The notes under the pieces are model-generated. The model was given only the letters and a program-made list of their open reading frames with translations. It was not told the DNA's origin and ran no database searches. The position numbers were made by a program, and so were the translations under genes. 64,000 nt of DNA from Corallochytrium limacisporum Hawaii (taxonomy: Eukaryota > Protista > Pluriformea): the NCBI GenBank assembly GCA_002811645.1, contig PDIP01000008.1, positions 190,608-254,607 of the forward strand. Direction: 5' to 3'. Shown here piece by piece: positions 37,797 to 43,097 of the stretch (positions are counted from its first letter, which is position 1; the number at the start of each line of letters is the position of its first letter).

Positions 37797-39023
37797 GATT
37801 GTGAGCTTCCGCGGTGGCCTACCATTTTGGCCACCATTGACCGAGTACATGCGTATCCATTGATACCTTTCCTCACATTCTTGAGTCATATCCAAGGCCA
37901 CTCCAGAAACAGAGACACACAGTCACATTGTCTGTGCAGATTCTCTGCCGCTTCATCTAGTGACCCAACATGTTGACACAATCTCTCCCTACGCACTCAT
38001 CTCCGGCAGGTCGACAAATATGTCCCTGGCGGCTGAAATATTCTCAGGGCACGTATTCGAATCTATTGACTACTTAGATTAGTCTTAAGTACTGTTGATT
38101 AAAAGTCTTGGGGTTGTGGGCCAGAAGAGGCTGCTGATTGGCCCATGAGCACCAGTGGTGTGCACGTCGGTACTGAATGTACTGAGGTCGAAATTTTCCT
38201 TCCAAAAACGGGAAGATGCCTGGGGAAGGGAGAAGTAACGACCCCCGCCGGGTCCGGGATCCCTAGGGCGGGGAGGGGAATTATGGATATATCGGTACTT
38301 TTACTATGAACACTTTGCCCCAATTGCGTCCCAGGTTGGCGGCCACGGGGACCCAAATACCCCCCACAGGGATCTTCCGTGGGTGTCCGCGGGACCACTG
38401 GAGAGACACACAAGAGGTCCCGGGAGACCAGGCGTTGGTGCGTTGGCGGTCAGCACCGCCGAGGTACTCGAGTACACTGCTTCCTGGGCCTGGAGCCCTC
38501 GCGGGTGTGGGGATATTCTCAGAGGGAAGGGGAGGGGAAGAGGGGTTTGTGTTGGTGCTACTTTCTTTGTGCCGAATATCCAGCGGTCAACCCGCGACAC
38601 ACACGCACACGGGAGAAAACTACGTCAGAAAAAGAGCTGTGTGTTTTGTATGGATCACAGTTCTGAAGTTGAGTGTAGGGAAGGCGTGTGGGGCCTCGAT
38701 TCCCGCGTGCCAGCTAGCAGGTGCAGTGACAGTTTTAAGGGAAAGGGGGATCAAGAACGGGAAATGAGCGCCTAAATCTTATGTACCATTGCTAGCTCAC
38801 TTCGGTCCACTCTCTGCGTGAGTCTGTTCTGGTCTCGACATCCGTATCCCAAACATCTTTTTCAATGTTGTTGAGGGGCATTTGCTTAGTCATGAGGAGA
38901 AATGCTGAGATGCTATCCAATGAACAGTGACGCATCAACTGCTTCATGTACTTCAGGGATGTCGTGGGATCTAGTTCAGAGTGCTAACCCTTCAAGGCAG
39001 GGCACACAGTAGAGTTGCTTTCA

Positions 39024-39950
39024 ATGACCATGGATACTGCAATCCATTTGTCAGCGGGTACGGTTGGTGGGATATCCGGTGTGCTGATCTCACACCCTTT
39101 CGACACCCTAAAAGTCCGGCTTCAGGTAAATCAGCACATCACGTTAGGAAAAGCCATTAGAGATGCTTTTAGGTCCTCATCAGGGTTACGGTCATTGTAC
39201 TATGGAATTACATCACCAATCATGGGCACGGCCTGGATCAAGGCCACTGCATTCACCGGAAATAACGTTGGCAGGGATGCGGTCCGCAGCATAGCTGGTA
39301 AGCCGAGGGATGCACCCCTCACGCTCACACAGAAATCCCTGGCGAGTGCTTTTGCAGGGGCAATCACTACCGTGGTGGTCACACCAGTCGAAAGGGTTAA
39401 AATTGCTATGCAGACTGCCATCATCGGTACAGGAAGGGAACCAGCAAGCGCAATTGGCACTGTCACACAACTTTTCCGTCAAGACGGCATTAGATACGGT
39501 CTTTATCGTGGATTTTTGGCGACGTTGGCTCGGGACATGCCCTCGTATGCTGTGTATTTTGTAGCCTATGATCAGTGCCGTCAGCGCCTGGCACAATTTT
39601 GGGGCACTGATCCGCAGAAGTTAAGCAAGGTACAGGTCGCGACCGCTGGGGCCATGGCCGGTATGCTTAGTTGGTTACCCATTCTGCCTCTGGATTTGAT
39701 AAAATCGCACCTGCAGTCTAGCACCTCCAACGGAGATGGTCTCCGATTCCGCGACGGAGTCATGCATGCGTACCAACTCTCTCAGCGCCATGGTATCTCT
39801 GTTCTCTGGCGTGGACTTAATGCTGCGATGCTGCGCGCAGTACCCTGCCACGCTGCTGTCTTTGTCGGCTATGAGACAAGTAAGAGGTGGCTCGAGCAGC
39901 AACGGGATATCTTGCATGCCACAAAGGCACGAGCAACTGTGACACTTTGA
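39024..39950 (+). CDS. Mitochondrial carrier (SLC25; carnitine/basic amino acid carrier-like)
   Basis: Three PX[D/E]XX[K/R] motifs: PFDTLKVRLQ, PVERVKIAMQ, PLDLIKSHLQ; RDMPSY, RAVP. Confidence 0.92.
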   Translation: MTMDTAIHLSAGTVGGISGVLISHPFDTLKVRLQVNQHITLGKAIRDAFRSSSGLRSLYYGITSPIMGTAWIKATAFTGNNVGRDAVRSIAGKPRDAPLTLTQKSLASAFAGAITTVVVTPVERVKIAMQTAIIGTGREPASAIGTVTQLFRQDGIRYGLYRGFLATLARDMPSYAVYFVAYDQCRQRLAQFWGTDPQKLSKVQVATAGAMAGMLSWLPILPLDLIKSHLQSSTSNGDGLRFRDGVMHAYQLSQRHGISVLWRGLNAAMLRAVPCHAAVFVGYETSKRWLEQQRDILHATKARATVTL

Positions 39951-40054
39951 CAGGCAAGAATCAAATAAAGAAATATGTATGTACACTTGTATGCGAGATG
40001 TGTTGCAAGCAAATGACACACACTGTATGGCGACTGTATCGTGATAATTGGAAA

Positions 40055-40495
40055 TCAGGAGAATGCCAATGCTCTACTTGTGATCTCCCTTGCTATCCAT
40101 TCCGTGGCCATACCACTCTGGGGGTCAGCGTCAGGGAGAGCCACGTACTCACCATCTTCTTCGTATCCGCCTTTAGCGTGTACAAACTTCCCGGTTCCCA
40201 GGGGCTGGTTGTTTAGCCACTGACCCTCAAACACATAGCGCTCCGTATAGCGGGTACCCAGACCTTCACGCCGTCCCTCCTTCCAGGTGCTGACGTACTT
40301 GGCGCTGGTTGACTTATGTGAATAGGTGCCCTTGCCATAGCGCTTGCCGTTCACGTAGTTGCCCTCATAGACGTCACTGCCACCGGGTAGGACCGCCTTG
40401 CCGAAACCGTGGCGCTCGTATTCCTCGTTCCGCTCCCCCTCTTAAGTCCCAAAGGGAGATTCCTCCTCTCCATTCTCACTGTCGTAGTGAGACAC
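40055..40495 (-). pseudogene. RSPH1: RSPH1-like (radial spoke head 1, MORN-repeat) disrupted gene
   Basis: One frame: [57 protein letters not shown]...KYVSTWKEGRREG...FEGQWLNNQPLGTGKF...EEDGEY; TAA at 40442-40444, GTG at 40493-40495. Confidence 0.75.
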
Positions 40496-43097
40496 GTTGA
40501 GTTCCTGTGCAGATCTACAAAGTACGAACGAGTTCAGATAGATAGCCTTCGCGGACTCATCACCGGTTCGTGATCCCGAATAGCCGTCGGCACCACATCT
40601 TCCGATTACCCGCCTTACCGCCCCTCGTCTCCCCTGGCACCCCAGCCGAAGTACGGGTCCCTGTGAGCAGGCGCAGCGTAACCCACCCACCCCGGGAAGA
40701 GTATTTCTGTCTGATTGCCTTGATTGTGTACCTCCTCCACCAAAAAGCCATATACTTTCCACCGAGTGCGATTGGAATCCGTATATTAAACACGTACGGC
40801 GTCTGAGCCACCTAAGCACGGCAGGTTGGTACACTCACCACTGCGCAGGCGGCTACACACTCGCGCACTGGTGCTTTTGCTGCTCTACGAAGAAAGGAAA
40901 AGCGTAAACAAGAGAGAGACGAAACGGTTTTTAATTTGGGGGTTGGGGGGGGGGGAGAGGAGGAAGCGCGACGTAACGGTGACACCAAGCGTTCTAAGTA
41001 CTAAATGCCAAAAGAGCCCAAAGGAAAGGAGTGTCGACAAGATATTTAATAATACGCGATTGGGTGGTGGGTCCGCCAGGGTAGGCCCCCCCCCGGGGGG
41101 GGGNNNNNNNNNNNNNNNNNNNNNNNNNNNNNNNNNNNNNNNNNNNNNNNNNNNNNNNNNNNNNNNNNNNNNNNNNNNNNNNNNNGGGAGGGGAGATGAG
41201 CAAGAAGAAGGAAATGGAAAGAAAAATATTAAAGAGGGAAGGGGGGGGGGAGCCAAAAACACGGCCCAAACCCTGAGGCAGTGTCTACGTGTGCTCGTTG
41301 CTTGTGGGTGTGTACTGTCTGTTGCGTAACCGTAACCCCCGCCGCGGCCGTCTGCCATCCAACATTGTACCCTGTTGGAGATTGGGTGGTGGCATCAAAC
41401 TGAGTTTGCGTACGCATGCCCCGTTGTTAAAGGATCTCGGGGCTGTGTGCCTGAAGTGTGTGAAGCAGGCGTGACCGTAGCACCATGTTACAGTCAGCAA
41501 AGATGCCCTGAGGAAGCAACGGATTTGCCAGTGTCCTCGTGAAGGAAGCGCGTACTCATACAAAAACTATGTGAACATCAAAGCGCCGTGGGAACTGGGT
41601 GGGCACCTGTAGGCCAGGCCGCGAGGGGGGGGGTTGGTTGTCCACTTTCATCACCCTTCGTCGGATTTCCAAAGGGTGAGAATTGCGGGGGAATGCCGGG
41701 ACTGCTATTTGCGGGCGCATGGAATCACGTAGACAAGGGAAGATCGAGAGAACCGCCGTGACAGCGAGCACAAGCGCATAACAAAGCGGGTAAACCGGTC
41801 TTGGGGACCAGAAAGCCACTTTCCTTTGCAACTTTTGGTCAGGGTTTCGCGAAATATTTATACATTTTTTGTTTAATTTTCTATTATTCCTGCGACCGGA
41901 CCCGTTTTCTCGACCAAACGGAGAGAGAGGCCAGGTGGGAGGGAGGGGTTCACGGGCAAGAGGAGCTGTGTATAGAAAGAGTACGGAATCGGGCGGCGAT
42001 ATCTGAACTCGGAGGACACATTCTTGTGAAAGCGCCAGCTGAGTGCCTGCGTGTCCGTGGGTGTTGAAATATCTAGGAAATTTGAGTAGTGATTTAAGGA
42101 CGTCTCGGTTGGGAAACATTAAAAGAAAAAAAGGAGAATCAGGTCCGAGTGTTTGCCTATGTGGAATCTCGCTCTGTGTGCCTGTACGGTCGTGCTCTTG
42201 TACCGTACCGCGATCTCCCCATTGTTGCGCGTGTGTGTGTGTGTGTACCCGATCTGTTCTCGTCCTCGCTCCTCCTCAACCCTCCTCCCATCTGTCTGCC
42301 CGTTCTGCAGGCAAACGAACTGCCCCTATCGGCTCCTCTCGCTGCCCAATACGCAATATGCACCTGCGTGCTTGGTCGACCGCTCGGATGGTGGACTATA
42401 TAGATCCCGTTGTGTTCCCTGGGCCCGCCCTTCCAAGTTCCTGACACCCCCCTCCCCTCCTCCCCGGGGTGGGGGGGGGCCTGTGCGGTAGTGCCACAAT
42501 CGATCCAGTCCGCCCGTGAGTACTTTGGGAGGAGGATTTTTTCTTTTTCGGAAAAATTTGCCAGGTCATATACCTTTCGGGCTCGCAATATTTCTGCTTG
42601 CCACACAGGACCGTCACCGCCCCCAGGACACACCCCTCCCTATACACACAGCCCTCACGGGAGCGATCACACAGGCAGATAAAACTACTCACTGGGGACG
42701 GGCGGTCTCACACACTTACACACACACCCGCGCAGAGGACGGGGGACCGACCCAGAGGTCAACAAAAAGTAGTGGAAAATTAGAAGGGGGAGGAGACGTG
42801 AGTGTGAGTTGCTCGGGGTCCGTTTCACATGAATTCAAGACTGTTTCGTGCCCGTCTGGCACGCTTGGTTCTCAGAGATGGTGTGTATCTTCGGTTTCGG
42901 CTGCAAGCGTTGGTGCTGGTGGTACGTTCCGGTTAGATGGAATGGTGCGATGGCTTGCGGAGCGATGGAACATGTCGCCAGACCGGTGTCATCAACCTTC
43001 AGAGTGTGGGTACTTGATGAACCACGGTTGAATATCATAATGGTCCGTACAGATCTTTCACTGGTTTTAATTCGGGTAATATTTTCAAAGACAAAGG

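Follow-up and report, generated by a model that had tools for sequence, protein, structure and literature searches.

A probable unitary pseudogene of the radial-spoke gene RSPH1 in Corallochytrium limacisporum

The reading frame and its lesions

The window considered here is the whole stretch of Corallochytrium limacisporum DNA that was analysed, 64,000 nucleotides in length, and on its minus strand, at 40055-40495, there is a single reading frame with an in-frame TAA at 40442-40444, which matches to the base the description in an earlier note of one minus-strand frame split by a stop. The frame, referred to below as the relic, opens with a former start codon (40493..40495, minus strand), for which the reference strain has GTG and a second strain ATG, the latter carrying a plus-strand C>T at 40495. 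Codons 2-17 (40445..40492, minus) correspond to the ancestral acidic N-terminus of RSPH1 in an alignment with the protein of Syssomonas multiformis (P0046), P0002, P0017 and others, and are followed by the TAA (40442..40444, minus), which is codon 18 of the frame, is present in two strains and replaces the conserved Tyr of the motif G-[TE]-Y-E-G-x-R-N-E. The 5' part of the relic is now a dead-end reading frame of 17 codons, and an ORF scan of the relic frame found no in-frame ATG 5' of the TAA in the reference strain. Beyond the TAA there are 128 open codons (40058..40441, minus), with no further stop or frameshift among them, that encode MORN repeats 1, 2, 6 and 7 and an RSPH1-type C-terminal segment. 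MORN repeats 3-5, about 69 amino acids, have gone in frame; the junction (40292..40330, minus) reads GTYSHKSTS|AKYV and resembles a fusion of repeat 2 with repeat 5 (repeat 5 end, repeat 2 start).

The relic ends with a TGA (40055..40057, minus) that is preceded by AFS and lies 104 bp from the TGA of a convergent mitochondrial carrier gene (39015..39950, plus), which is intact (Pfam Mito_carr, 3.6e-53); the convergent spacing of 104 bp given in the earlier note is the exact distance between the two stops. The spacer itself (39951-40054) varies, the second strain being without 11 nt at 40022. Some 600 bp upstream of the relic there is an assembly gap, a run of N at 41107-41185 between poly-C and poly-G tracts. 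The genetic code of the window is standard. Among ORFs in the window that start with ATG and extend to at least 300 aa, TGA ends seven, TAA five and TAG four, so that all three codons terminate long ORFs here and stop-codon reassignment, already judged unlikely for TAA in the earlier note, is ruled out. A kinetoplastid origin, which the seemingly few introns of the window might suggest, is rejected as well, for a Corallochytrium protein in EukProt matches the relic at 100%.

Comparison with intact RSPH1

RSPH1 contains MORN repeats and belongs to the head of the radial spoke in motile 9+2 axonemes. The assignment of the relic to this family had been proposed in the earlier note, together with a homology search by which it might be judged, and such searches bear it out. 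The post-TAA piece matches the Pfam MORN family at 1.4e-10, and the best matches among solved structures are mouse and human RSPH1 (E 4e-27 to 4e-24, 88-98 bits), which stand above other MORN proteins, the bit scores being 98 for RSPH1, 61 for MORN1 (E 8e-16) and 39 for RSP10. A protein search with the 128-aa piece, made within a length window, gave two matches, and shorter natural forms of RSPH1 may exist elsewhere. When the closest match, a coral RSPH1, was used as the query in its turn, it recovered RSPH1 from across the animals together with a 216-aa protein of Syssomonas multiformis (Colp12), and the named relatives of the closest match were all RSPH1.

Alignment of the broken frame was carried out by reading through it with X in place of the stop. 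HMMER gives the relic two placements on mouse RSPH1, with residues 1-88 matched to mouse 21-107 and residues 10-104 to mouse 99-190, which is the pattern of a protein without its middle repeats. The same conclusion is reached by comparison with the RSPH1 of Syssomonas multiformis Colp-12 (P0046, 216 aa), a species that is grouped with Corallochytrium in the literature as a flagellated relative. Overall the relic is 55% identical to this protein, with 61% identity over residues 3-63 and 45% over residues 120-188, and in the pairwise alignment it corresponds to Syssomonas residues 1-63 and then, from AKYVSTW onwards, to residues 135-186, which comprise repeats 6-7 and the RSPH1-type tail. The AKYVSTW part aligns to the late KYV.TW repeat and not to repeats 3-4. 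The earlier note had seen a jump from the second MORN repeat to the KYV.TW repeat and put the deletion at about three repeats, and it is indeed repeats 3-5 that the relic lacks from the full set of six to seven.

The two sequences are colinear from the Met-Ser at the start to the C-terminal segment. The acidic stretch that follows the N-terminal Met-Ser, the motif G-x-Y-E-G-x-R-N-E and the motif ERHG.GKA.LPNG all lie in this order in the DNA of the relic, with TAA in place of the Tyr and GTG in place of the Met; GTYEG in Syssomonas is GT-stop-EG in Corallochytrium. The GTG at 40493-40495 aligns with the Met of MSD or MSH in the Syssomonas and animal proteins, and the multiple alignment sets the TAA on the conserved Tyr of GTYEG.RNE, the residue that the earlier note had expected at this place. 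The RSPH1-type C-terminal segment (N..P.G.GK....G.E..GEY) is represented in the relic by NNQPLGTGKFVHAKGGYEEDGEY, which corresponds to mouse residues 160-189 and Syssomonas residues 160-186. Unlike the relic, the Syssomonas gene is an intact ORF with all its repeats.

Animal RSPH1 (meichroacidin, TSGA2; structures 7dmp, 8wzb and 8j07) is 45-54% identical to the relic over the aligned parts and shares with it an acidic N-terminus, a repeat 1 that opens with G.YEG.RNE..ERHG.GKA.LP.G, the MORN repeats as such and, towards the C-terminus, the segment KYV.TW...N..P.G.GK....G.E..GEY. The relic differs from it in having about four repeats rather than seven, a stop at the conserved Tyr and, in the reference strain, a GTG start; it is also without the long acidic tail of vertebrate RSPH1, and its translation is not expected. 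Measured against the Syssomonas protein, the relic is further by about 10-19 identity points from a sponge and two vertebrate proteins, and by only 1-10 points from the proteins of coral and Nematostella and from eukprot m.99982. These alignments show that the relic derives vertically from a holozoan RSPH1; with an in-frame TAA in two strains and no ATG in the reference strain, it is RSPH1 by descent, not by function.

Independent contigs and strain differences

Logan contigs from two DNA runs (X1 and X2) and two presumed RNA runs (X3 and X4) were compared with the locus. X1 and X2, which come from the probable source sample, cover 38900-40955 with zero differences from the reference at contig depths of 176 and 619, and with such agreement the lesions cannot stem from a slip in the consensus of the published assembly. 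Both of the positions that the earlier note wished to see checked in reads, 40442 and 40495, carry the lesion in these contigs. The DNA contigs break at a G run near 40955. X3 and X4 date from 2015, with 13-14 Mb of contigs in each run. At this locus they have contigs on genic DNA alone, and RNA is for that reason their most likely source, although this is a guess. X4 does not differ from the reference and extends over the carrier gene only. X3 differs from the reference at 15 positions in 1469 nt (about 1% of sites) and consequently represents another strain.

A single X3 contig (39069-40548) runs through the carrier gene, the 104-bp spacer, the whole of the relic and 53 nt upstream, with no joint, the TAA at 40442-40444 kept and ATG at the start. 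There is no indel within the relic frame, which indicates that the deletion of repeats 3-5 is common to both strains. The leader in this contig (40496..40548, minus) reaches as far as 40548, some 53 nt upstream of the ATG/GTG, though contigs show neither the strand nor the true 5' end. The contig is unspliced and unedited at the TAA, which bears on the RNA check proposed in the earlier note, though the run is only presumed to be RNA and contigs drop minor isoforms, such that a rare spliced form would be invisible in X3. That one X3 contig extends over both convergent genes suggests that their transcripts overlap at the 3' ends.

The second strain also allows the lesions to be placed in order. 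Since the TAA is common to strains that are about 1.8% apart at silent sites, it predates the strain split; the deletion of the repeats and the change of Tyr to stop came before the split, and the loss of the ATG came later and in the reference lineage only. The suggestion that the GTG was once an ATG is borne out by the ATG that the second strain keeps.

The carrier gene (39015..39950) served as an internal control for selection, and between the strains it has four synonymous differences and one replacement difference (pS 1.8%, pN 0.15%, pN/pS 0.08). The relic has one silent and six or seven replacement nucleotide differences, namely M/V1, N46D, L79P, V105I and a three-base change that gives L143Y and A144T, so that the selection test proposed in the earlier note gives a pN/pS of 1.7-2.0 in the relic as against 0.08 next door, on seven or eight differences and with a Fisher p of about 0.07-0.08. 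The pN of the relic (2.0%) is about equal to the pS of its neighbour. With Syssomonas as the outgroup, X3 keeps the ancestral state in P79 and the reference keeps it in N46 and V105, so derived changes have arisen in both lineages. Small as the numbers are, these differences point to neutral change in the very part of the relic that any model of a rescued gene needs to be functional.

Other ciliary genes, the public gene model and the fate of RSPH1

According to the genome paper, Corallochytrium was sequenced by Illumina, assembled with SPAdes and annotated from de novo predictions and transcriptomes, and its genome is streamlined with a reduced intron content. The draft assembly of 24.1 Mb in 286 contigs was examined by six-frame HMM searches. 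No second copy of RSPH1 was recovered when the relic and the Syssomonas protein were searched against this genome, the matches being generic MORN proteins only, the best of which is 535 aa long and combines MORN repeats with a hydrophobic stretch near its C-terminus. The Pfam families Radial_spoke (RSPH4A/6A/9) and Radial_spoke_3 (RSPH3) had no match in the draft assembly at E ≤ 0.01, and none was found for Tektin or NYD-SP28 (DRC1/2). There is one dynein AAA1 module in the genome, contained in an ORF of 4907 aa, presumably that of cytoplasmic dynein 1. A DHC_N2 linker fragment of 115 aa, with a TAG in it, was found at G000:C261:50910-51308 (L009:4711-5109, minus), and its best solved match is the axonemal dynein DNAH2 (5e-16); it is wedged in a short gap between an 814-aa ORF and Rad51. 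As the six-frame method does find other ciliary families, the absence of the spoke partners and of the axonemal dynein motors from the draft assembly is probably a real loss.

Several of the ciliary genes that were found are damaged. DNALI1/p28, an inner-arm dynein light chain (Pfam 3.7e-66; G000:C231:108020-108448, L013 about 1300-2050, minus), has homology that persists across no fewer than three or four frame changes but lacks an in-frame start codon, and it looks like a frameshifted pseudogene. The transition-zone genes B9D1 (G000:C282:9707-10180, L018) and B9D2 (G000:C70:23139-23563, L019) appear to be broken too, the former by one in-frame TAG and the latter by two TAGs at conserved Trp positions together with a frame change. 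Some motility-associated genes are intact by ORF length and HMM cover, namely GAS8/DRC4 (492-aa ORF, 2.8e-74; G000:C233:68204-68800) and PACRG (250-aa ORF, 1.7e-34; G000:C250:130244-130741), which are candidates for roles outside the flagellum now that the axonemal context has seemingly gone; two DM10 proteins and two large CFA20-domain proteins are apparently intact as well. IFT57 (G000:C143:188816-189830, L006/L007) is in two frames parted by an acidic linker, which an in-phase GT..AG segment of 73 or 76 nt could join, a frameshift being equally possible. At G000:C11:139908-140500 there are MORN matches over three short frames of 128-144 aa on one strand, and this may be another broken MORN gene. 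The survey of axonemal genes that the earlier note had recommended has thus found axonemal or ciliary genes missing, and DNALI1, B9D1 and B9D2 broken.

Taken together, these observations make it very probable that the relic is a unitary pseudogene, the single, in-place and dead copy of RSPH1 in Corallochytrium limacisporum, whose disabling lesions are seen independently of the assembly in Logan contigs of two DNA runs and in a second strain. A holozoan RSPH1 lost three MORN repeats in frame, and its Tyr codon 18 became TAA, before the strains split; apparently neutral change then followed, with the reference strain losing its ATG to GTG. The locus is still present in a transcript-type contig of one strain, unspliced and with the TAA retained. 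In the strain with ATG a transcript from near 40548 would give a peptide of 17 residues, whilst the reference strain would offer no start codon, and no spoke-head protein would be expected in either case as translation would end after 17 codons or never begin. RSPH1 may well have died because the structure it served no longer exists, a view that draws on the failure to find the spoke partners and axonemal dyneins and on the breakage of other ciliary genes.

A quite different picture of the locus is given by a public gene model, Clim_evm72s243 (EukProt, 148 aa), which is 100% identical to the relic over the whole of the 128-aa post-TAA piece. Its first exon (40691..40751, minus) is MAFWWRRYTIKAIRQKYSSR plus one base, after which EGERNE continues, and its intron of 250 nt (40441..40690, minus; donor G|GTGGGT, acceptor TTAAG|AG) swallows both the TAA, the last A of which sits in the acceptor, and the ancestral N-terminus. 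If this model were right, a new exon and an intron that skips the stop would yield a working four-repeat MORN protein of 148 aa. The borders GT..AG are in phase, and small introns are plausible in this genome if the IFT57 frames are joined in the way described above. However, exon 1 has no similarity to any RSPH1 N-terminus in the set with which it was aligned, the sequence removed as an intron holds the ancestral N-terminus in frame, GTGGGT makes a weak donor and the replacement changes in exon 2 have accrued at what looks like a neutral rate. Moreover, the sole transcript-type contig, that of X3, is colinear through 40441-40548, that is 107 nt into the intron, shows no joint there and ends at 40548 without reaching exon 1, and 40549-41090, which includes exon 1, is not covered by either of the RNA-type runs X3 and X4. 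The model is very unlikely to be correct, and the intact 148-aa protein would be an annotation artefact built on an unsupported intron. The earlier note had allowed that a spliced mRNA with TAAG as its acceptor might give an intact protein; a model of just this kind does exist in public, but neither the X3 contig nor the homology of exon 1 supports it. It is conceivable, if quite improbable, that the intron at 40441-40690 is now being born around the nonsense-mutated 5' end with a newly recruited first exon, and that a shortened four-repeat derivative of RSPH1 survives outside the axoneme after the loss of its spoke partners; such a case would show an intron in the act of being born through the skipping of a premature stop.

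The remaining explanations fare less well. Some low-level function might be retained from the ancestral start if the UAA were read through, or if the cell removed an in-frame segment of 39 nt (GTGAGA...TTAAG, about 40441-40479), a candidate intron that was read by eye from the sequence, has GT..AG ends and is divisible by three in length; the second strain retains its ATG and has the locus in a transcript-type contig, and when UAA is read through, Tyr or Gln is commonly put in, Tyr often by near-cognate decoding. Against this, a G after the UAA makes for strong termination, 39 nt is far below the 73-76 nt of the candidate IFT57 intron, the X3 contig keeps both the 39 nt and the TAA, the reference strain is without an ATG altogether and, over the seven or eight strain differences, no purifying selection is visible in the relic, so that retained function of this sort is very unlikely. 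It would be extremely improbable that the stop and the GTG are errors of assembly or sequencing, or mutations of a laboratory culture, with the natural gene intact, for although the assembly is a draft with a gap of N nearby (at about 41107-41185), two DNA runs at depths of 176 and 619 have the same letters and an independent sample from a different study, with about 1% of sites differing, also has the TAA. Finally, MORN repeats are common in non-ciliary proteins, the genome encodes a membrane MORN protein of 535 aa elsewhere, and the first descriptions of mammalian RSPH1 (meichroacidin) placed it on meiotic chromosomes and spindles, all of which could be counted in favour of a non-axonemal MORN protein that is uninformative on flagella. 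This, too, is highly unlikely given the score of 98 bits for RSPH1 against 61 for MORN1, the presence of the N-terminal motif specific to RSPH1 as well as of the segment N.QPLG.GK...E.DGEY at the C-terminus, and the closest named relatives, which are all RSPH1.

As a unitary pseudogene the relic is of a known kind, and its attribution to the loss of a trait, which calls for no new kind of biology, is well supported. Like other unitary pseudogenes that follow trait loss, it is a single in-place copy with few lesions, apparently neutral change and intact neighbours, and linked genes have been lost or are decaying too; it differs from the usual case in that the lesion is masked by a public gene model and in that a cryptic flagellated stage has been proposed for the host. 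The single stop, the lack of a frameshift, the 55% identity to Syssomonas and the modest identity deficit with respect to animals suggest that the relic is young, and as a rough estimate the neutral period would amount to no more than a few times the 1.8% silent divergence of the strains. Given that the spoke partners have gone whilst RSPH1 is lightly damaged, the losses appear to have been staggered, and another role may have preserved RSPH1 for a while; in mammals the protein has been described in a role outside the axoneme. The 128 open codons and the 55% identity to Syssomonas RSPH1 count against a dead gene, and it is possible that RSPH1 was recently active or is residually so; the intact state of GAS8 and PACRG is a further point against. 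The earlier note had viewed the locus as a recent pseudogene that records the loss of the motile flagellum; the pseudogene stands, and so does its recency as far as RSPH1 is concerned, but with staggered losses this need not extend to the flagellum as a whole.

The claim of a cryptic flagellum in Corallochytrium is said to originate with Torruella et al. 2015. That paper aside, the literature searched made no mention of flagellar pseudogenes in this organism. It has been reported that Corallochytrium possesses key components of the flagellum, which led to the prediction of a cryptic flagellated stage, and another paper inferred centrioles in corallochytreans from genomic and imaging analysis. 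A dead RSPH1 weakens the idea of a hidden swimming stage in Corallochytrium limacisporum, a single-celled relative of animals near the root of their lineage. Viewed alongside the other relics, it suggests that the motile flagellum was truly lost in this lineage, and fairly recently. The locus illustrates as well how the gene lists on which a cryptic flagellum is proposed can be inflated: the only RSPH1 is dead and yet figures in the public proteome as a seemingly intact protein. One gene model, Clim_evm72s243, is flagged for correction. The specific value of the locus lies in this masking by a public gene model and in a lesion that can be ordered relative to the strain split, the stop common to two strains and the loss of the start private to one of them providing a datable marker of flagellum loss.
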